Source: Diplonema japonicum
Taxonomy: Eukaryota > Protista > Euglenozoa: Diplonemea
Reading direction: 5' to 3'
Assembly (NCBI GenBank): GCA_964019335.1
Contig: OZ025650.1
Span: 744,001-808,000 of the forward strand
DNA: 64,000 nt
Under the pieces are notes generated by a model. It was given only the letters and a program-made list of their open reading frames with translations. It did no database searches and was not told the DNA's origin. Position numbers and translations under genes: made by a program. Below are positions 40,661-51,897 of this stretch, piece by piece. The first letter of the stretch is position 1, and each line of letters opens with the position of its first letter.

Positions 40661-40821
40661 CCTGCTGAGAGTCGATCGTCCTCTCAGCGCGGCGACGAGC
40701 TCAGTGAGAGCGGCGACCTCAGGCGAACTCTTTTTTGCGGTGATAACCGCAAATCTGCGGATTTTCTGGCAGCCTTTAAAAAGTTGCAGCATGGTTTCTT
40801 ATTATTGTCGGCTGTGGTGTA

Positions 40822-40838
40822 TCTCCTATGGTGTAGTG
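40822..40838 (+). pseudogene. 5' fragment (17 nt) of tRNA-Gln, left as a TSD
   Basis: TCTCCTATGGTGTAGTG identical to 42311-42327. Confidence 0.8.
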
Positions 40839-40857
40839 ACCGAGCGGTGCGAGAGGG

Positions 40858-41897
40858 ACAGAAAGAAAGAAGTGGCGATCATGAGGCTGAGGGTGGGGAA
40901 GAGCCCACTCACTTGCGGATACCTACTCATACCCCCAGTCGAGGAGGTCCCGTGCCATCTATGTTCGCAACCCCAGACTCTAAGCCACCTCCTACGGGAA
41001 TGCCAAGACGAAAAGAGGATCGACCAAAGGAGTCAGATCTTCGGTAGCTCCCTTCCTTCCCTCAAAGTCCTCCTGTCCACCGACGCCTGTAAGACCGCCC
41101 AGCTCTTGGAGCGGCAGGGAACATTGTGAAAAAACTTATAAATTATAATATATTATACTCTCCAAACATTGAGGTCTGAAGTTGTTATACGACTTCAGAC
41201 TGCAATTGTTTCTAACTCAATCTCTCGACTCTGGCTTCACTCCTATCCTTTCTTTTCACCTCCCTCCCCAGTGTCTTCCCTTATTTTCCATTACCAGGCC
41301 CCTGTCCCCCGCCCCCAGTGTTATTCAAATTTTCACTCACCTTTCATATAGAAAGAAAAAAGAAAAAAAAAAAAAAAAAAAGAAAAAAAAGGACAGATGA
41401 TTCAAGCTTCGGTGTACACAATCGAGCTTGATTTGAATTCCTTTATTTTGAGAAAAAAAAAAAAAAACTGAAGAACGAAACTTAATTGAATTGAATTTAT
41501 TGGCTCCCGAAAGCCCAACAAGTCCAGCAGACGGTGGAGTTTCACAGTCAGCTGGTTAATTTTTCACAATTGAAACTCCTCCAAAGTTCTTAAAATCTGG
41601 GAGGTCGTCTCTTGTTACTAGAGGCGGCTAATGCCTCGAGACCCAGGTGCTGCCTGGTGGGTGGGATCGGTTTTATTTTATTATGAAAAGAGCGTGGTGA
41701 GGGGGTCCAAGTAATTTACAACAGGGAGCAGCGGACCAGGACCCCTCGACCAATGGCTCAGTAACAGAGACTGCTTTTCACGAATCACTTTCAAACACCT
41801 CTCTTGGTTTGAAGTGATGTCCCTTTCCCTTTCCCTTGAATGGTTTTCTCTACTCCCCTTCGATCCTCCCGCCTGGTAGTGGAATATTTATTATTAT
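40858..41897 (+). mobile_element. 5'-truncated copy (A') of the full-length element
   Basis: Near-identical to 49940-51030; TSD TGCGAGAGGG (40848-40857 / 41898-41907); (TTA)n tail. Confidence 0.93.
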
Positions 41898-41912
41898 TGC
41901 GAGAGGGTCACC

Positions 41913-42297
41913 TTTTCCCTTCCTTTCCCTTCCTTCCCCTTCCTCTCACTGTTTCCCATTTCCTCTTTTTTTATTTTCACACTCACCAATGATTCGCTCA
42001 ATAGGAGCAACACCTCCCTGGGGGGCTTTCCGCCGGAGGTTCCAGCCAAAGAAGGACATCCAGCTGGAAGGTAGGCCCCCGTTTTTCTCTCACTTGACTG
42101 AGGGAATAATGTAATTCAGCCCTCTTCGGCTGTCCCAAAGCAGAGCACGGGTTGGTGGGGGACCAGGGCTCCTCCTGCTTGCAGAAGCCTGGTCCATTGC
42201 CCTCCCTATTTCCCCATGGTTTCCCTTCACCTTTTTTTCCCTTTTCTCAGGTGTTGCTCTCCATGGCGGCCCTGCATTGGTATTTTGAAAAAAAAAA
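41913..42297 (+). mobile_element. 385-bp non-coding poly(A)-tailed retroposed insertion (D)
   Basis: 12-bp TSD GAGAGGGTCACC (41901-41912 / 42298-42309); ends in A10. Confidence 0.75.
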
Positions 42298-42310
42298 GAG
42301 AGGGTCACCA

Positions 42311-42382
42311 TCTCCTATGGTGTAGTGGTTAGCACTCGGGACTCTGAATCCCGCGACCGCGGTTCGAATCCGCGTAGGAGAA
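42311..42382 (+). tRNA. tRNA-Gln(CTG)
   Basis: Acceptor TCTCCTA/TAGGAGA, anticodon stem CGGGA/TCCCG, loop CT-CTG-AA, GTTCGAA, T7 terminator. Confidence 0.93.
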
Positions 42383-42389
42383 TTTTTTT

Positions 42390-42626
42390 GCCAAGTCTTT
42401 GATGTGCGTCAAGCAGAGGACAATTACACCCTGGGAGAGCATGCAAAAGTGGTGGAAGGCGAAGGCCCTCCGGCTATCGAGGTGACGGTAGTCCACCCTT
42501 GCGCGGAGAGACAGGCGGAGGCATATCAGGCGAAGCGGATACGGTGACACGAAGAAGAGGAGTATGGTGTCACCTAGATGACCTGTCCAAGCGTATATCA
42601 CCATCACCTGACCGAGCGGTGCGAGA
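42390..42626 (+). mobile_element. 3' fragment of a distinct retroelement (E), possibly restriction-like-endonuclease type; continues at 43792-43799
   Basis: Ends ...TGACCGAGCGGTGCGAGAGGGTCACC (also at 40837-40857 + 41908-41912); encodes AIEVTVVHP...AYQAKR. Confidence 0.5.
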
Positions 42627-43784
42627 ATTTCGAGAAGTTTGAAGAGCTAAACAGGGAACAAGAAGTTGCGATCATGAGGCTGAGAGTGGGGAAGAGCCCC
42701 CTCATAAGCGGGTATCTACTCAATCCCCCGGCCGATGTGGTCACATGCCACCTTTGTTCGATGCCTCAGACGCTGAGCCACCTCCTGAAAGAATGCCAGG
42801 ACGATGGTAGAGCTGACCAGAGAAGTCAGATCTTCGGTTCCTCCCTTCCTTCGCTCAAGGCCCTACTGTCAACTGACGCCGGGAAAACCGTACAATTCCT
42901 GGAACAGCAGGGCCTGTTGTGACCGACCGTGAGATATAATCCCCTTTATAAATTATATTATAAACTAAACTTTACTTATATACTTTTCTCTCAAATTATC
43001 CTGAGTTTGAAGCTGTACTGTTGTTATACGACTTCAGACAGCAATTGTTTCTAACTCAATCTCTCGACTCTGGCTTCACTCCTATCCTTTCTTTTCACCT
43101 CCCTCCCCAGTGTCTTCCCTTATTTTCCATTACCAGGCCCCTGACCCCCGCCCCCAGTGTTATTCAAAATTTTCACTCACCTTTCATATAGAAAGAAAAA
43201 AGAAAAAAAAAAGAAAAAAAGAAGGACAGATGATTCAAGCTTCGGTGTACACGATCGAGCTTGATTTGAATTCCTTTATTTTTGAGAAAAAAAAAAAAAA
43301 GAAGAAAAAAAAAAAGAAGAATATATATAAAAAAAAAAAAAAAACTGTAGAACGAAACTTAATTGAATTGAATTTATTGGCTCCCGAAAGCCCAACAAGT
43401 CCAGCAGACGGTGGAGTTTCACAGTCAGCTGGTTAATTTTACACAATTGAAACTCCTCCAAAGTTCTTAAAATCTGGGAGGTCGTCTCTTGTTACTAGAG
43501 GCGGCTAATGCCTCGAGACCCAGGTGCTGCCTGGTGGGTGGGATCGGTTTTATTTTATTATGAAAAGAGCGTGGTGAGGGGGTCCAAGTAATTTACAACA
43601 GGGAGCAGCGGACCAGGACCCCTCGACCAATGGCTCAGTAACAGAGACTGCTTTTCACGAATCACTTTCAAACACCTCTCTTGGTTTGAAGTGATGTCCC
43701 TTTCCCTTTCCCTTGAATGGTTTTCTCTACTCCCCTTCGATCCTCCCGCCTGGTAGTGGAATATTTATTATTATTATTATTATT
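42627..43784 (+). mobile_element. 5'-truncated copy of a sister subfamily (B)
   Basis: EVAIMRLRVGKSPL...CHLC...HLLKEC, diverged from A; 3'UTR near-identical to A; TSD TGCGAGA (42620-42626 / 43785-43791). Confidence 0.9.
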
Positions 43785-43808
43785 TGCGAGAGGGTCACCA
43801 TCTCCTAT

Positions 43809-44250
43809 ACGACACTGGGCTGCCGCTCCACGCGCTGCTTTCCAAGCACTCCGCCGAGGTCTGCGCCTTCATCGAGGCCTCCGGGCTCTTATCATGGTCT
43901 GAGTGTGGGATCTTCCCCCCGGCCGACGCAGCACAAGGGTGATCGTGAGCCCATTATAGACCCCCCCCCCTCCCCCTTTGTCCCCCCCCCCCCCCCCCCA
44001 CACACACACTCACACGCAAATGGGCCAAGAAACAACCTCCCGGGAGGCAGCCACAGGGAAGGCCGGGAGGGCGCAGGGCGCAGCAAGAGAACGCCCCTGC
44101 GTTCAGCCTCGAGGGGACCGCCCCGAATGTAATCAGCCAGGTCGGCTGTCCCAGGAAGGGGGAACGGAGCACCGAAGGGAGGTTCAGCCCACGTGGTGGC
44201 CCTCCCCCCACCCCCAGTTTCCCCCCAGTGGTTATTATTGCAAAAAAAAA
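43809..44250 (+). mobile_element. 5'-truncated element of a third family (C)
   Basis: Encodes DTGLPLHALLSKHSAEVCAFIEASGLL (similar to the ORF2 C-terminus); 34-nt tail identical to 38875-38908; TSD CACC(A/C)TCTCCTAT (43796-43808 / 51041-51053). Confidence 0.75.
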
Positions 44251-44287
44251 CCAACGATTCTAAAGCTACAGTTTCTGTACTTTATTG
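44249..44287 (+). other. Complete 39-nt euglenozoan (Diplonema-type) spliced-leader exon at the 5' end of the retrotransposon
   Basis: AACCAACGATTCTAAAGCTACAGTTTCTGTACTTTATTG; AAC start and conserved CAGTTTCTGTACT.TATTG end; not followed by a GT donor. Confidence 0.92.
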
Positions 44288-44341
44288 GGTGGGGGGTCTG
44301 ATACACTATCACATAATAAATTTTAATAAAAATTTATAAAA

Positions 44342-45724
44342 ATGGATCAGCAGACCAGCGCGGACGCCTCCACGAGGCCCCCACTGGACAGCCTGCAGAT
44401 GCAGGTGGACGAAGACGCCGCGGCGATGCCAGAGTTAAATCTGGTATTCGAAGAAGAAGAAGAGAAGAAGAAGGAGAAAAAGGACGAGGTGCGGAAGGGC
44501 AACTGGATCATCGGTCCGCTGCCGAAGGGAGTGGAGGAGAAGGGCGCAGCTGCGATTCTCGCAGCAACGGTCTCAGAGCAGACCGAGAAGGTCGTCATCC
44601 TGACGACGGAAGGCGCGTCCTTCCTCCTCTACACCGCACGCACCCCCCCCCACCACACCTGCATCAAGGTGAACGGCGCCACGGCAGAAGTCCTGCCGGC
44701 GATAAAGGTGGCCGACCCCCTGGAGTCCAGGGCTGCAGGAGGGAAGAAGTGGTCGAGGAAGGGGGAAGAAAAAAAAAAAAGAACAAAAGTCCACCAAGAC
44801 AGGTACAGCCCAGAAGAATTTCTGGAATTCTACGGCCGGTCGGTAGGGTGGCAGCTCTACTGCAAGGCAGTAGAAGAGTGGAGGAAGAGGACCGCCACAC
44901 CCCAAAAAAACACACAGGAGCCCCCCCAACAACAGCAACAACAGGCAACAATCTCGCCAGATATGGTAGCCCAGATGCAGAATCTGCATCAAGAAGTTGC
45001 GGCGCAGAGGGCCGAACTCTCGGCGCAGAGACAGGAGATCACCGCGCAGAGAGAGGAACTGCAGAGACAGAGGACGTCTCTGGCAGAAGCACAGTCCAGT
45101 TACCCGGCCCTGCAGAAACAGGTCAGTGCGCAAGGGGAGGCGGTGCTGAAGCAGGGGGAAGGACTGGCAGCCGTCCAGACCAGCATCCAACCCCTGCAGA
45201 AACAGGTAAGTGTGCAGGGGGAGGAGCTGCGGAAGCAGGGAGAGGGTCTGGCAGAGATCAGGACCAGCCTCCCGGCTCTGATGGAGCAGCTGAGGAGTCA
45301 ACAGGAGGCTCTGGAGAAAGGGGTGCGTGCCATGATGGCCAAGCAGGAGGAGCGGGACGCGAGGGACACCGCCAGAAGAACGGCCCTAAAGGCCAAAAAG
45401 GCCCAAACCACCGCCACACCCACAGCCCCGACACCGTCCAAATTCATCGGACCGGAGCTGGAACCGAACACCCCACAGCAACACCAGCCATCCTCGGGCT
45501 CGGAAACGGAGTTGGAAGACACTCCCGCCGGAGCAAAACCAGGAAGGCGCAGGGGCCAGGAATGGGCCTCTGCAAAGGTGTCGCTGAAGGCAGCGCCCTA
45601 CGCACCAGGGGGCTCGAAGGGTTCGAAGGGGACAACCTCCTCCTCCACCTCGACATCGCCGACACCGAGCACACCGGACACAGCGAAGAAGTCCGGGAAA
45701 GGCGGAAAATCAAAGAAGAGGTGA
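44342..45724 (+). CDS. Retrotransposon ORF1 (coiled coil, no CCHC knuckle)
   Basis: 460-aa ATG ORF 54 nt after the SL; Q/E-rich coiled coil with two 25-aa repeats; basic C-terminus. Confidence 0.85.
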   Translation: MDQQTSADASTRPPLDSLQMQVDEDAAAMPELNLVFEEEEEKKKEKKDEVRKGNWIIGPLPKGVEEKGAAAILAATVSEQTEKVVILTTEGASFLLYTARTPPHHTCIKVNGATAEVLPAIKVADPLESRAAGGKKWSRKGEEKKKRTKVHQDRYSPEEFLEFYGRSVGWQLYCKAVEEWRKRTATPQKNTQEPPQQQQQQATISPDMVAQMQNLHQEVAAQRAELSAQRQEITAQREELQRQRTSLAEAQSSYPALQKQVSAQGEAVLKQGEGLAAVQTSIQPLQKQVSVQGEELRKQGEGLAEIRTSLPALMEQLRSQQEALEKGVRAMMAKQEERDARDTARRTALKAKKAQTTATPTAPTPSKFIGPELEPNTPQQHQPSSGSETELEDTPAGAKPGRRRGQEWASAKVSLKAAPYAPGGSKGSKGTTSSSTSTSPTPSTPDTAKKSGKGGKSKKR

Positions 45725-46227
45725 AAAAGGTGATAAGTTTTTTCCATTTTACCATAATAGATAAGAAAGAAAAAAAAAAGAAAAAAGAAAGTGTTTCCCT
45801 ATTAAGCCCCCAACCCCCCAATTCGTCTACAAAAAAAAAAATAATAAAAAAAAAAAAAAAAAAAAAAAACCATAAAAAAAAAAACAAAAACAAAAAAAAA
45901 AACATAAAGAAAATAAAAGAACAAGAGAAAAAAAAAAAAACAACAAAAAAAAAATATAAAAATAAAAAAAAAATAATACACGACGACGACGACGACGACG
46001 ACAACGGGTCACAGCAATGTCATCTCTCTGCGCGAAGGAAGCTCGTACGACTTGGCTACAACTCGCGGCTAAATCCTGGCCGGCCCCGCACGTATAGGGG
46101 TGTCCAAACGGGACAAGGCGTTAGTGGTGGCGACGTAAGGTCTGTTAGGGCCGGCCCCCCCCAAGTCGTACAACCCTATCTTCGAAGACCTGAAGGTAGG
46201 GGTGACCACAAAGGCAGAGTGACATAC

Positions 46228-49200
46228 ATGCTGAAACGACCCTCGACCACACCGAGAAAGATGCGCAAAGGTTGCGGACCACATGATATGGACATCTTGG
46301 CGTGCGGTGACGTCGAGCAGAACCCGGGGCCAGCCGCGAAAGACGGATGGCTGAAGATAGTCTCGCTGAACGTGAGGTCCCTCAGAGCTAGGAAGGCCGA
46401 AATCGAGAAGGCTATCGAAGAAACAGCGCCGGACATCCTGTGTCTCCAAGAGACACACCTAACATCAGACGATGCGATCCACGGCTGGTTCGAAGGGTAC
46501 AGAGCTTTCCGAAGAGACAGGACGCGACCGAGAAGGAGGAATTTCCCCATAAAAGGGGGCGGCTTACTGACTCTCGTGAAAGAAGGCATCAACGCTAGCG
46601 GTGTCGAAAGGAAGGAGAAGAAAAATGACGTGACGGAAAGACTGGACGTCAAAATATACCCGCCAGGTCAAAAGGAGATCCTCCTGGTGAACATCTACCT
46701 TCCACCAACATCGCCGTCAGATCCGAGCGATGACAGACCGAGCATCGACACCTACTTCAACCCGAACACACTCCCGACAGGGGACAGAACCTTAATCATG
46801 GGGGATTTCAACGCCCACCACCCTCTGTGGGACGGGAGAAGAAAGAAAGAGGACCTCATAGGTGACAAAGTCGCAAAGTGGATGATCGAGAAAGGGATGC
46901 GACCCTGGAATGACAAAGCCACACCGACACTATTGAACACAAGAGGTTCCTTATCATCACCGGACCTGGTGATAAGCGGGCCAGACATGGACTCTAGATC
47001 CTGGACAACCCTCGATTCATGGGGGTCTGACCACATACCCATGTCCATCCGGATAAGAACGAAATACGAAACCGGACCAACCATTAAGAAATTCAGCTTC
47101 AAAAAAGCTGACTGGGAGGGGTACAGAAATCATCTGGAGTACACCCTGAGGCACCTGCAGAGAACAGGAGACCCGGTCAGGCTAAACAAGCAGTTCACTG
47201 AAGCAGTCAAGGAGGCCGCCAGGCTCTTCATCCCAAGAGGGGGAGCGAGAGGCGGGAAAGCGTGGTGGACTGAAGAGCTGACGCAACTGGTTGGAAGAAG
47301 AAACGCTCTGAAGAAGGAGATTATGTCGGACATCGGCATCCCATCGATAGAACAATGCGAGAGGCTTGGTGAAATCAGCAGGCAAGTGCAGAAACAGATC
47401 GATGAAGGGAAGAAAAGAGCGTGGGCCGACTACATGAAGGAGCTGTCTCAGAAAAAGGACTTGGGACACGCTTTCAGGACGATAAAAACGCTCGATGGCA
47501 GGAAGGACAAAGATCCAGTAGCACCACTAATGGCAGGCGGCAAGCTACACACATCGGCGAAGCAAAAAGCAGACGTCCTTGTGGAGCACTACGCAAAGGC
47601 TTTTGCACCCCACCTTAACAAGGACACAAAGAAGATGCTGGACGGTGAAAACAGGAAGTCCAAAGTGATCAAGGACTTGAGGGACAGGGTCACTTGCCCA
47701 GGGATAAGCATGGAGGAACTGAAGCACGCGCTGAGGCAGTTGAAGAAGGGGAAATCCCCGGGCCCAGACGGTGTCTACAACGAGATGCTGAAACACCTGG
47801 GGGGGACGGCCATGGACACATTACTCCATCTGTTCAATATGTCATGGGAGAAGGGAGTGGTACCATCAGACTGGAGGTTCACGCACATAATCCCACTTTA
47901 CAAAGGAAAGGGCAAGTCAAGAAGTGATCCGGCATCGTACAGACCGATATCGCTAACCTCCAACATTTCAAAGACAATGGAGAGGATAGTAAAGATAAGG
48001 GTCGACTACCACCAAGACGTGGGAGATGTGAAGAGGGTGCACAAAATGCAGTCAGGTTTCAGGAAAGGGCGCTCCACAGAAGAGAACGTCCTGCAAGTGA
48101 CCACGAAACTGAACCGCATCAGAGACGATGAGTTCTGCGGCGGACTTTTGCTCTTCGACCTGAAAGGAGCCTTCGACACAGTGTGGCACAAGGGTCTAAA
48201 TGCGAAAATGAGGAGTAATGGCTACCCGCAAAGAATTACGGACTGGGTGGCCGCTTTCCTAGACCAGAGGATCGCTGCCGTCAAGGTGAGTGGCGAAACA
48301 GGGAAGCACGAACACATAACGGGTGGGGTTCCACAGGGAACCATCCTTGCCCCAACCCTCTTCTCGATCTACATGGACGACCTCTCAGAGACGTTCGAAA
48401 AGGAGGTCATTGATGCCGTGATGTACGCAGACGACATTGCGGTGGTGCTGCACGAAAAAGACCTGGACAGCTTGAATGGAAAACTGATGAAGATCCTGAG
48501 GGTTGTGGAGAGCTGGTGCTCGAGAAACTCGATGGTGATCTCCAAGGGAAAGACAGAGTTCCTTCCCGTTGCTGGCATCTCCTATCCGCAGAGAACACTG
48601 AAGGGGAAGATCAGAGCAACTTTCAAGACCGGCGAAGAACTCGAGGTGGTCGAAAAAACAAAGCTGCTCGGAGTCACCTTCGAGGAGGACATGCTTTTCT
48701 CCGAACACTCCAGAGACGTCTTGGAAAGAGGTGAAAGCAGGGTCAGGCTGCTGAGCTGCCTTGCGGGAACGAGATGGGGTTGCAAGAAGGTGGTGTTGAG
48801 GGCTCTATACCTCACATATGTGCAACCAGTCTTCAGATACTGCTTGGGCGTGTACGGGTCATTTCTCCCGAGCGGGAGGAACACGCCCCACGAAGGCATC
48901 AAGAAGCTTCAATACAGGGCAGCGGTGAAGATCACAGGCTGCATCGCGTCATCAGAGACATTCGCGACACTGAACGAAGCGGGGCTGTGGACCCTGGATG
49001 CGCTGATCGAACACGACAGCCTGTTGCTCTACGAGTCACTGATGAGAAAAGTGGACACCGCCGCATACCAGGCGACTCAGCCTCTGGAGGATCTGACCAG
49101 GTACGAGAAGCTCCTACCAAGGAGGACTTGGTCTGACAAACAGAGAGAGGCATCGAAAGCCTACAAACTCCCAGAGAGGACGGGCACACCTCACTCGGGC

Positions 49201-50211
49201 GCCGTCTTCATGAGGAGACTCGCGGTTGCACCCTGGCAAAGATTCGAGGGGCAACTCGTGCTCTCCCCCTTCCTAGACACGCAGGTGAAAAGGACGGACC
49301 CAAAAGAGGTCAGGAAAGAGGCAACAACGAACACCCTGAACAGGTTATGCGAGAAACACGGCCGGGCATTCTGCATGGTGTTCACAGACGGGTCCGTAAA
49401 GGATGGGAAAAACGGAGGCTCGGCCGCCATCCTGCTGCACAACGGGTCCGATGCTGCCTACGGGATCAGCGGTGGACTGTATTCGACATCCTACAAATGC
49501 GAACTCAGGGCCCTGAGGCTAGGGATCCGACTGGCGACAAGACTCTCAGAGAGGAAGCTTGCAAGCCAAGGGATGGTTCTGATATGCACAGATTCGCAGT
49601 CGGTGATACGGAAGATGTGCCAGGGACACATGTCGGCAGCCTCCAAAGATGACTTCGAACTCTGGCAGGAGGTCGCGAGCTTGACAGGCAGAGGCCACAA
49701 GCTAATCGTTCAATACGTCCCGAGTCACTGCGGGTACAAGTGGAACGAGAAGGCGGACCAGAAGGCAAAAGAGGCGAGCGAAAGACTGGCCCACACCCGT
49801 GAGACAGACATTGAGGTGGTTAAAACTCTGGTGAGGAAGCATGTCATCAGAAGCCACCTCCGCCTATGGAAGGATACTGGCGTCACAAAGACGTACAGGG
49901 AGCAGTTTGCCGGAAGTTACGAGAAGTTCGAGGAGCTGGACAGAAAGAAAGAAGTGGCGATCATGAGGCTGAGGGTGGGGAAGAGCCCACTCACTTGCGG
50001 ATACCTACTCATACCCCCAGTCGAGGAGGTCCCGTGCCATCTATGTTCGCAACCCCAGACTCTAAGCCACCTCCTACGGGAATGCCAAGACGGAAAGAGG
50101 ATCGACCAAAGGAGTCAGATCTTCGGTAGCTCCCTTCCTTCCCTCAAAGTCCTCCTGTCCACCGACGCCTGTAAGACCGCCCAGCTCTTGGAGCGGCAGG
50201 GAACATTGTGA
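46228..50211 (+). CDS. Retrotransposon ORF2: 2A peptide, AP endonuclease, reverse transcriptase, RNase H, CCHC finger (start codon uncertain)
   Basis: GDVEQNPGP; SLNVRS, CLQET, GDFNAH, SDH (APE); YRPISLTS, QSGFR, FDLKGAFD, GVPQG, YADD (RT); FTDGS, ELRAL, TDSQS, VPSHCG..NEKAD (RNase H); CHLC..HLLREC. Confidence 0.95.
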   Translation: MLKRPSTTPRKMRKGCGPHDMDILACGDVEQNPGPAAKDGWLKIVSLNVRSLRARKAEIEKAIEETAPDILCLQETHLTSDDAIHGWFEGYRAFRRDRTRPRRRNFPIKGGGLLTLVKEGINASGVERKEKKNDVTERLDVKIYPPGQKEILLVNIYLPPTSPSDPSDDRPSIDTYFNPNTLPTGDRTLIMGDFNAHHPLWDGRRKKEDLIGDKVAKWMIEKGMRPWNDKATPTLLNTRGSLSSPDLVISGPDMDSRSWTTLDSWGSDHIPMSIRIRTKYETGPTIKKFSFKKADWEGYRNHLEYTLRHLQRTGDPVRLNKQFTEAVKEAARLFIPRGGARGGKAWWTEELTQLVGRRNALKKEIMSDIGIPSIEQCERLGEISRQVQKQIDEGKKRAWADYMKELSQKKDLGHAFRTIKTLDGRKDKDPVAPLMAGGKLHTSAKQKADVLVEHYAKAFAPHLNKDTKKMLDGENRKSKVIKDLRDRVTCPGISMEELKHALRQLKKGKSPGPDGVYNEMLKHLGGTAMDTLLHLFNMSWEKGVVPSDWRFTHIIPLYKGKGKSRSDPASYRPISLTSNISKTMERIVKIRVDYHQDVGDVKRVHKMQSGFRKGRSTEENVLQVTTKLNRIRDDEFCGGLLLFDLKGAFDTVWHKGLNAKMRSNGYPQRITDWVAAFLDQRIAAVKVSGETGKHEHITGGVPQGTILAPTLFSIYMDDLSETFEKEVIDAVMYADDIAVVLHEKDLDSLNGKLMKILRVVESWCSRNSMVISKGKTEFLPVAGISYPQRTLKGKIRATFKTGEELEVVEKTKLLGVTFEEDMLFSEHSRDVLERGESRVRLLSCLAGTRWGCKKVVLRALYLTYVQPVFRYCLGVYGSFLPSGRNTPHEGIKKLQYRAAVKITGCIASSETFATLNEAGLWTLDALIEHDSLLLYESLMRKVDTAAYQATQPLEDLTRYEKLLPRRTWSDKQREASKAYKLPERTGTPHSGAVFMRRLAVAPWQRFEGQLVLSPFLDTQVKRTDPKEVRKEATTNTLNRLCEKHGRAFCMVFTDGSVKDGKNGGSAAILLHNGSDAAYGISGGLYSTSYKCELRALRLGIRLATRLSERKLASQGMVLICTDSQSVIRKMCQGHMSAASKDDFELWQEVASLTGRGHKLIVQYVPSHCGYKWNEKADQKAKEASERLAHTRETDIEVVKTLVRKHVIRSHLRLWKDTGVTKTYREQFAGSYEKFEELDRKKEVAIMRLRVGKSPLTCGYLLIPPVEEVPCHLCSQPQTLSHLLRECQDGKRIDQRSQIFGSSLPSLKVLLSTDACKTAQLLERQGTL

Positions 50212-50535
50212 AAAAACTTATAAATTATAATATGTTATACTCTCCAAACATTGAGGTCTGAAGTTGTTAAACGACTTCAGACAGCAATTGTTTCTAACTC
50301 AATCTCTCGACTCTGGCTTCACTCCTATCCTTTCTTTTCACCTCCCTCCCCAGTGTCTTCCCTTATTTTCCATTACCAGGCCCCTGTCCCCCGCCCCCAG
50401 TGTTATTCAAATTTTTCACTCACCTTTCATATAGAAAGAAAAAAGAAAAAAAAAAAAAGAAAAAAAAGAAGGACAGATGATTCAAGCTTCGGTGTACACA
50501 ATCGAGCTTGATTTGAATTCCTTTATTTTGAGAAA

Positions 50536-50595
<60 letters not shown>

Positions 50596-51045
50596 GAAGA
50601 ACGAAACTTAATTGAATTGAATTTATTGGCTCCCGAAAGCCCAACAAGTCCAGCAGACGGTGGAGTTTCACAGTCAGCTGGTTAATTTTTCACAATTGAA
50701 ACTCCTCCAAAGTTCTTAAAATCTGGGAGGTCGTCTCTTGTTACTAGAGGCGGCTAATGCCTCGAGACCCAGGTGCTGCCTGGTGGGTGGGATCGGTTTT
50801 ATTTTATTATGAAAAGAGCGTGGTGAGGGGGTCCAAGTAATTTACTACAGGGAGCAGCGGACCAGGACCCCTCGACCAATGGCTCAGTAACAGAGACTGC
50901 TTTTCACGAATCACTTTCAAACACCTCTCTTGGTTTGAAGTGATGTCCCTTTCCCTTTCCCTTGAATGGTTTTCTCTACTCCCCTTCGATCCTCCCGCCT
51001 GGTAGTGGAATATTTATTATTATTATTATTCAAAAAAAAACACCC

Positions 51046-51117
51046 TCTCCTATGGTGTAGTGGTTAGCACTCGGGACTCTGAATCCCGCGACCGCGGTTC
51101 GAATCCGCGTAGGAGAA
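51046..51117 (+). tRNA. tRNA-Gln(CTG), identical to 42311-42382
   Basis: Same cloverleaf; T7 terminator. Confidence 0.93.
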
Positions 51118-51897
51118 TTTTTTTAGTCTTGTCAGAATTTAACTGTCTGTTCCTTGATTTCTTCGGTCTTAGCAGCTTCACGGCGATCTCTCTGGTTGGT
51201 GAGCTGACATATTTCTTGAAATCTTGGCTGTCAGGACATTGCTCCTTGATTGGCTTTGGACTAACATTATTTTAACACAGGCGATCGATGCTGCTGGGCT
51301 GAACAGAAGAGACAAGAAATAACCTCCTACCAATCTTCGGTTTTTTTGTTCAGGGTTTTTCCTGATCACCCAACCCAAAAGGAACCAGACAGGGAAATCA
51401 ATTCCCCTCCCCCTTTTTGTATCGATTTTTATTCTTTTTTTTTCCTTTTCCCTTCCTTCTTGCCACGGCCTGTTTCACATACTCTCCTCCGCATCCACAC
51501 CCACAGGATGACAGCAAAGGGCGCTGGTCGCTGGATGTGATAATAAGAAGAAATTTCCTCCTGAAAGACAAAATGATTGAATTCAAGAAAATGTTCCATT
51601 TTTCTGTGATTTTATTTTACCCAGTCTTGCAAAGTGTTTTCCATTATTTATATTACCTTAAGTAAATTTTTCTGCCTGGTTATTAAATGGGTTTGGCCCT
51701 CCTATACCCTTCTCTTCCTTTTTTTTTCCTGCACTTGTTGAGTAATTTTACTTTACACCCATTTCTTTTTGTTTTATCTCTTTCTTTTTTGTTTTGTGTT
51801 TGTCGAAAAAAAAAATATCAAAAAAAAGAACAAAAAAAATAAAAAAAACAAAACAAAAAGAGGGTTTAAAAAAAAAAAAAGCGACAATACAAGAACG

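Follow-up and report, generated by a model that had tools for sequence, protein, structure and literature searches.

The locus described here touches on several known systems. L1Tc and ingi of trypanosomatids, whose hallmark is Pr77 together with a single ORF, carry an HDV-like ribozyme, L1TcRz, in their first 77 nt (PMC3185411, PMC4035085); it cuts at +1, and upstream context modulates cleavage (PMC3185411). L1Tc transcripts are reported not to be trans-spliced. The L1Tc cDNA clone 55 keeps 110 nt of foreign 5’ sequence, showing that upstream sequence can stay attached, as the spliced leader (SL) has in the copies analysed below. CRE, SLACS and CZAR interrupt the exon of SL RNA genes, encode a restriction-like endonuclease located C-terminal to the reverse transcriptase (RT), and have SL gene sequence on both flanks. 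In dinoflagellates, retrogenes carry relict SLs (Slamovits and Keeling 2008, as relayed in PMC3229502 and PMC6050394), and our literature searches for SL relicts, or for SL-bearing RNAs reverse transcribed into the genome, returned dinoflagellates only. The same searches returned no SL-headed retrotransposon from diplonemids or kinetoplastids, and such elements are mentioned neither in the D. papillatum genome paper (PMC10161547) nor in the D. japonicum genome note (PMC13598402).

The window, a 64-kb stretch of Diplonema japonicum contig OZ025650.1, contains a young, intact APE-RT-RNase H LINE of this species, which we call family W. The element is headed by AACCAACGATTCTAAAGCTACAGTTTCTGTACTTTATTG, which matches the exon of this genome’s SL RNA genes at 39 of 39 positions, so the complete 39-nt exon recognised there by the initial annotation stands. 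The 3’ 19-mer of the SL occurs once in the window, in none of 100 shuffles, and 232 times genome-wide (62.5 Mb in 132 contigs, the scope of all genome-wide counts given here). Position 44287 is followed by GGTGGGGGGTCTG and then by an A/T-rich 54-nt UTR that leads to the ORF1 ATG. The annotation had also stated that the sequence after the leader is not the SL intron, and comparison with the SL RNA genes bears this out: GGTGGGGGGTCTGATAC differs from the intron, which starts GTACCCAATCTGATCC, except for a short TCTGAT, which was dismissed as too short to count as similarity. An 11-bp target site duplication (TSD), CAAAAAAAAAC, encloses the SL plus the element and runs into the leader with the 3-nt AAC overlap noted earlier, the first AAC of the SL lying inside the 5’ copy. 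Since the SL lies within the duplicated target, it arrived as part of the inserted cDNA; a search of the window found no SL sequence 3’ of the element. Because AAC is shared by TSD and SL, this copy fits reverse transcription up to the cap as well as a stop just short of it. Both the window copy and a second copy on contig C61 are cDNAs made from RNA that carried the mature SL exon fused straight to element nt 1. Coordinates are collected in Table 1.

Table 1. Features of the SL-headed family W copy, in window coordinates, and 5S rRNA chimeras of the same family elsewhere in the genome.
Feature	Position	Strand	Remarks
TSD, 5’ copy, CAAAAAAAAAC	44241..44251	+	last 3 nt double as SL nt 1-3; identical 11-mer at 51031-51041
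DNA-encoded 39-nt SL exon without SL intron	44249..44287	+	identity to SL RNA gene exon; 19-mer unique in window
Predicted HDV-like self-cleaving ribozyme	44288..44422	+	cut would fall 5’ of G44288; in silico
Predicted P1	44288-44294 with 44379-44385		GGUGGGG with CCCCACU, G1·U wobble
Predicted J1/2, 64 nt	44295-44358		A/T-rich UTR and ORF1 ATG
Predicted P2	44359-44363 with 44418-44422		CGCGG with CCGCG
Predicted P3	44366-44368 with 44376-44378		GCC with GGC
Predicted L3	44369-44375		UCCACGA
Predicted P1.1	44370-44371 with 44386-44387		GG after P1 paired with CC of L3
Predicted P4	44392-44396 with 44401-44405		CCUGC with GCAGG
Predicted J4/2			candidate catalytic C at 44410, within CGAA motif
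ORF1, 460 aa, intact	44342..45724	+	coiled-coil-like repeats, no Pfam domain
ORF2, 1327 aa from first ATG, intact	46228..50211	+	APE (PF03372/PF14529), RT (PF00078), RNase H (PF00075)
3’ UTR with internal A-runs, (ATT)n tail	50212..51030	+	same UTR and tail at 41120-41899 and 42920-43786
TSD, 3’ copy	51031..51041	+	directly after element tail; 4 nt upstream of tRNA-Gln (51046-51117)
5S chimera, L036	C61:82045		5S 3’ fragment + A5
5S chimera, L043	C61:52086		5S 3’ fragment + A5
5S chimera, L039	C52:176051		whole 5S + UUUU

ORF2 consists of a short leader, an APE endonuclease, RT, RNase H and a C-terminal CX2CX7HX4C motif. The leader is 35 aa long and ends in a 2A-like DVEQNPGP (46309-46332) just ahead of the APE domain; such ribosome-skipping motifs before APE are known from L1Tc and other APE-type LINEs. 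ORF2 is 99% identical (1322/1327) to the complete ORF of a EukProt Trinity transcript, showing that the family is transcribed. Its nearest relatives are 26–38% identical and either unnamed or automatically named ‘jockey’. By the order of its ORF2 domains, W would be grouped with the I/jockey-like APE-type LINEs that have RNase H. We rejected an element end at the internal A-runs (50440-50470 and 50533-50593) in favour of one at ~51030, after the (ATT)n tail; two truncated copies within the window have this 3’ UTR and tail as well. The surrounding region (40820-51124) is a stack of W-type and other retroelement fragments upstream of tRNA-Gln. It also contains a second, identical tRNA-Gln (42311-42382) and, at ~40820, the truncated 5’ part of a tRNA.

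To see where family W begins, we searched the genome for the pattern of its first bases, which gave 13 copies with an intact 5’ end. Only two of them carry the SL, the window copy and one at C61:~817-855, and their junctions are identical. The other 11 start at the same G, here called G1 (44288 in the window), preceded by 0–5 extra bases or by 5S rRNA. The non-5S fillers are AAAG, AAAA, AATA, GTTA (twice), AATC, TTA and TA. Most SL-less copies were inserted behind the poly(A) tail of another element, from which 2–5 filler bases separate them, six of the 11 behind a short, poly(A)-tailed ‘T’ repeat (...CATTGGTATTTTG-An). At three loci 5S rRNA is fused directly to W nt 1, the two chimeras on C61 probably being one duplicated event; as these template-switch joins fall at G1, the template RNAs concerned ended there. 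Over the first 2.2 kb, the part of each copy that was compared, W copies are near-identical. Position 44416 is C in the window SL copy, as in most copies, and T in the C61 SL copy, as in the C61 5S chimeras. Each SL-headed copy thus matches a different SL-less lineage, which suggests from sequence that there were two separate events and that the SL was probably gained twice. An SL-bearing RNA as transposition template, as initially proposed, therefore holds for these two copies; as the regular intermediate of the family it probably does not, given its trace on only 2 of 13.

The canonical start coincides with the 5’ end of a predicted HDV-like ribozyme. The 11 SL-less starts and both SL junctions lie at its putative cut site, and the in silico fold is a nested double pseudoknot (P1, P1.1, P2, P3 and P4) in which G1 marks the cut site and J4/2 contains a C, the arrangement of the HDV-like ribozymes that head the non-LTR elements R2, L1Tc/ingi and RTE. 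The predicted ribozyme extends over the UTR as well as codons 1–27 of ORF1, and its 3’ half is coding. In an alignment of ten sequences from three subfamilies, 97% of cells pair in the named fold versus 31–46% with the partners slid, and five pairs are changed on both sides (P1 position 7, GC to UA; three in P4; one in P2), a covariation that rests on those three subfamilies. We take the L3 and CGAA motifs to resemble those of HDV and CPEB3. A generic HDV-type descriptor, written after the candidate was seen, matched two sites on both strands of the window (128 kb), one of them starting exactly at 44288, compared with 0.73 sites per window (128 kb) in block-wise dinucleotide shuffles. It also matched at the same place in the other W copies scanned and in the subfamily-2 copies scanned (L048 and L049), as well as at the first G of L003, the one copy it hit of family V, which is unrelated and very abundant. 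The second site in the window, at 42021 (P1 GGGGGCT with AGCCCTC), is internal to the ‘T’ repeat and present in every copy of it; this match may be due to chance. Rfam returned no ribozyme or SL family, either for the whole window at the gathering threshold or at E<=10 for 44150-44750 and 44350-44430; a match to HDV may be masked by the pseudoknots and by the 64 nt inserted in J1/2.

These data bear on two further claims of the initial annotation. It had trans-splicing define the 5’ end of the element in place of a ribozyme, which is contradicted by the 11 of 13 intact 5’ ends that lack the SL and share a start G, and by the ribozyme predicted at that G; on this modelling, the ribozyme and not trans-splicing best explains the family W 5’ end. 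It had also considered that the new copy might be dead on arrival. This is unlikely, since by cutting any transcript that reads through the copy the predicted ribozyme would release a canonical RNA.

As a euglenozoan APE-RT-RNase H LINE whose (predicted) ribozyme cut site is element nt 1, W resembles L1Tc and ingi; a cut at this position means that the ribozyme is carried along at each transposition. Also common to both are the 2A-like NPGP before the endonuclease and a C-terminal zinc-finger-like motif in ORF2. Unlike L1Tc, W has a separate coiled-coil ORF1 and an (ATT)n tail, and its predicted ribozyme is 135 nt long, with the UTR and the start codon of ORF1 falling within a J1/2 of 64 nt. 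W combines two ORFs with the 2A-like motif, and whereas L1Tc transcripts reportedly escape trans-splicing, some W copies carry the SL complete.

The Diplonema SL RNA consists of a 39-nt exon and an intron of ~80 nt (PMC10161547), and the same layout is found here. Nine of the 232 genomic occurrences look like SL RNA genes or their retrocopies, with the 39-mer, GTACCCAATCTGATCC..., a stem-loop and a T-run; a conserved upstream block is common to the gene-like copies read (C4 and C15), and pairs ~350 bp apart occur at C15 and C59. The k-mer depth of the SL in a DNA-like run, X2, is ~1,600x that of the flank (60,089 vs 36), as against nine gene-like copies assembled; SL RNA arrays are probably collapsed in the assembly or missing from it.

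Six public sequencing runs contain the W stretch; none is on record as RNA, and the comparison was with their assembled contigs, which carry no RNA starts or strand. In the DNA-like runs X1, X2 and X4 unitigs break at 44288, as many genomic contexts predict. Run X3 looks like RNA: it holds ~1,000 different SL-headed contigs, the longest contig being 7.4 kb. One of its unitigs extends without a break from SL nt 19 across W past 45150, and position 44416 shows the T allele only. The corresponding contig has one 1-nt gap, so that SL+G1 and SL+G2 are indistinguishable in the RNA. RNA with the SL-W junction therefore probably exists; it may stem from trans-splicing or from the C61 locus, where SL-W is encoded in the DNA. 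Since RNAs starting at G1 leave no upstream k-mers, the X3 unitig is compatible with their presence.

SL-headed copies are found in other families too, at very different frequencies. In family V (GGTGGTGGGGATAACA...), 790 copies have an intact 5’ end, most of them right after T-runs with a (C)A filler. In most of the matches listed the junction reads ...TTTT(C)A/GGTGGTGG (the slash marks the element boundary), in which A(-1) and G1 make an AG; in sequence terms, this looks like a polypyrimidine tract followed by a CAG acceptor. The SL heads ~5% of V copies among the matches listed. At least three of these heads are SL+G2 (SL+GTGGTGG, at C1:890276, C2:842501 and C33:55479) and four sites are SL+G1 (SL+GGTGGTGG), which is what splicing at the junction AG predicts. 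At two places the whole SL RNA, from the exon through the intron to the 3’ end, is fused to a retroelement 5’ end: L004 (C2:150576) and C107:8788-8913, where the junction reads ...CACTTTT-AG-GGTGGTGG. Exon-only heads number two in W and at least seven in V, whereas such whole-RNA chimeras number none in W, one in V and one in another family; the predominance of the exon-only form points to spliced RNA. At the other extreme, a largely subtelomeric family, SL+GTCGTTCG (SL+GTCGTTCGTGTTCTGCTGG), has the SL on 77 of 80 intact 5’ ends, with many copies within ~10 kb of contig ends (e.g. C3:991882, C5:489 and C16:4886); a sister family starts SL+GTCGTCTGTGTTTTTG. Among 28 SL-headed copies outside SL RNA genes, SL position 1 is A in eight, five of which are uninformative. 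SL nt 2 is thus where most of these cDNAs end, which would fit a template with a modified cap, an expectation based on cap 4 of trypanosomatids.

A full SL followed by TTTCTGTACTTTATTG is found at seven places (C8:849421, C12:811877, C20:399044, C58:506925, C76:2342, C83:358325 and C102:195399). By analogy with dinoflagellates, we read this as re-trans-splicing at the CAG inside a DNA-encoded SL. The pattern that would follow from the re-splicing at the AG of the genomic SL envisaged for the window copy is thus seen in other families, and W itself holds no tandem relict cut at the internal AG. Our loci resemble the dinoflagellate relicts, as the sources above relay them, in that a DNA-encoded full SL heads a retrocopy and that SL relicts cut at the internal AG occur in the same genome. 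They differ in belonging to a diplonemid with a 39-nt SL, in that the retrocopied RNA is the full-length RNA of the retrotransposon itself and not a host mRNA, and in that W lacks the stacking described there for repeated cycles. Several single junctions were also recorded. L018/L019 (C9) consist of SL nt 1-30, GC and a full SL; L001 (C1:315926, SL+GGGTGGGCGGGTCTG) is a decayed relative. In L052 (C51:76263, SL+TGGGTGGACTG) and at C44:64551 (SL+TGGGGG), the SL meets a related element at its base 3, and SL junctions thus do not all fall at G1.

How, then, did the SL reach G1? We consider it reasonably likely, on a model built from these observations, that the predicted ribozyme normally sets the 5’ end of W and that the SL is an occasional passenger, acquired by trans-splicing at an AG before G1. 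The ribozyme would normally make the 5’ end of W RNA by cutting co-transcripts right 5’ of G1, which would explain why most new copies begin at G1, behind a few untemplated bases or 5S rRNA gained by template switching. As W inserts in A-rich tails, a source copy with an ...AAAG/G1 junction would present an A-rich tract and an AG, the 3’ splice-site context described in this species, and in a read-through transcript the SL could be trans-spliced at the element boundary. Should the capped RNA escape self-cleavage, target-primed reverse transcription would run through the SL to about nt 2, and the cDNA end would join the A-rich target by microhomology. The exact exon-G1 junction without filler in two copies favours splicing, which needs an AG before G1. 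Such an AG, at -2/-1, is present in one of the 11 SL-less copies, on C96, which reads A27-AAAG/GGTGGGG. In D. japonicum, the sequence ahead of 3’ splice sites is reported to be unusually rich in A (PMC12621601). A single base sets the C96 copy apart from the window copy, of which it is therefore not the direct parent; the assembly holds no T-lineage source with an AG before G1, and no SL+G2 head was found in W, although copies with A at -1 should yield them. In a variant that we regard as fairly unlikely, both systems would act in sequence, the SL capping the co-transcribed RNA for export and translation and the 5’ ribozyme later stripping the leader to regenerate the exact template end. Insertion in A-rich or T-rich tracts would make an AG with the G-rich first bases of the element, and in the SL+G2 form the last G of the leader would replace G1 and rebuild P1. 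If this is true, SL-headed copies would be the visible leak of an SL-then-ribozyme cycle shared by several diplonemid LINE families.

Other routes have to be weighed against the passenger reading. If an SL-capped mRNA were the regular intermediate and trans-splicing defined the 5’ end, SL-less copies would be incomplete cDNAs. The coincidence of the SL junction with the canonical 5’ end in both SL-headed W copies, the purely SL context upstream of W in RNA-like X3 and the family with its SL on 77 of 80 ends would all fit. We nevertheless hold this to be improbable: stops at one base in 11 of 13 copies are unlike random early termination, the 5S joins imply templates that ended at G1, a covarying fold sits exactly there, and X3 is compatible with RNAs starting at G1. 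About equally doubtful is a jump of the reverse transcriptase from a ribozyme-made G1 end onto the 3’ end of free SL exon, the intermediate left by the first step of trans-splicing, which would be seamless and need no AG. The W enzyme does use small RNAs (two independent 5S events among ~11 independent insertions), and a jump would suit the T-lineage SL copy, since in its known relatives G1 is preceded by A and not by AG. The 5S joins in W, and the whole SL RNA joins in other families, are indeed of the U6/L1 template-switch type. The SL head of W, unlike these, has neither SL intron nor filler bases, which makes splicing a better explanation than a template jump, and other such junctions carry extra bases. 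Moreover, free exon should be far scarcer than full-length SL RNA, whereas it is the exon-only heads that predominate, and the SL+G2 heads of V fit splicing at A(-1)G1.

Very improbable, in our view, is that the SL is a DNA-encoded head inherited within a W sublineage, one SL-headed copy descending from the other. The identical junctions are as this predicts, and the near-universal SL of the GTCGTTCG family shows that such a state exists; on the other side, only 2 of 13 W copies have the SL, the two have different bases at 44416 and both fall among SL-less copies, re-expression should leave SL+TTTCTGTACTTTATTG relicts that W lacks, and the ribozyme would remove an encoded SL. Finally, site-specific insertion into an SL RNA gene or SL relic, as in CRE, SLACS and CZAR, is refuted, and the initial annotation was right to set it aside. 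W shares with those elements that it is a euglenozoan non-LTR retrotransposon physically linked to SL sequence, and beyond that presence nothing speaks for such an origin. The TSD encloses the SL, which is at the head only, nothing SL-like lies 3’ of the element, the sequence downstream of the leader is not SL intron, the endonuclease is of the APE type, N-terminal to RT, and not restriction-like, and 11 sister copies occupy non-SL sites, the targets being dispersed and A-rich.

Altogether, the SL head is best explained as a record that the RNA of this LINE is trans-spliced, and not as the device that defines the 5’ end of W. The SL-headed copies provide direct genomic evidence in a euglenozoan that the full-length RNA of a LINE can itself be SL trans-spliced and that SL-bearing RNAs get reverse transcribed into the genome. 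In W a predicted HDV-like ribozyme and the host SL meet at the same nucleotide, which makes this a testable system for the long-standing question of how retrotransposons come by an RNA that can be translated and has the correct ends, in organisms whose nuclear mRNAs virtually all gain their cap via the SL.
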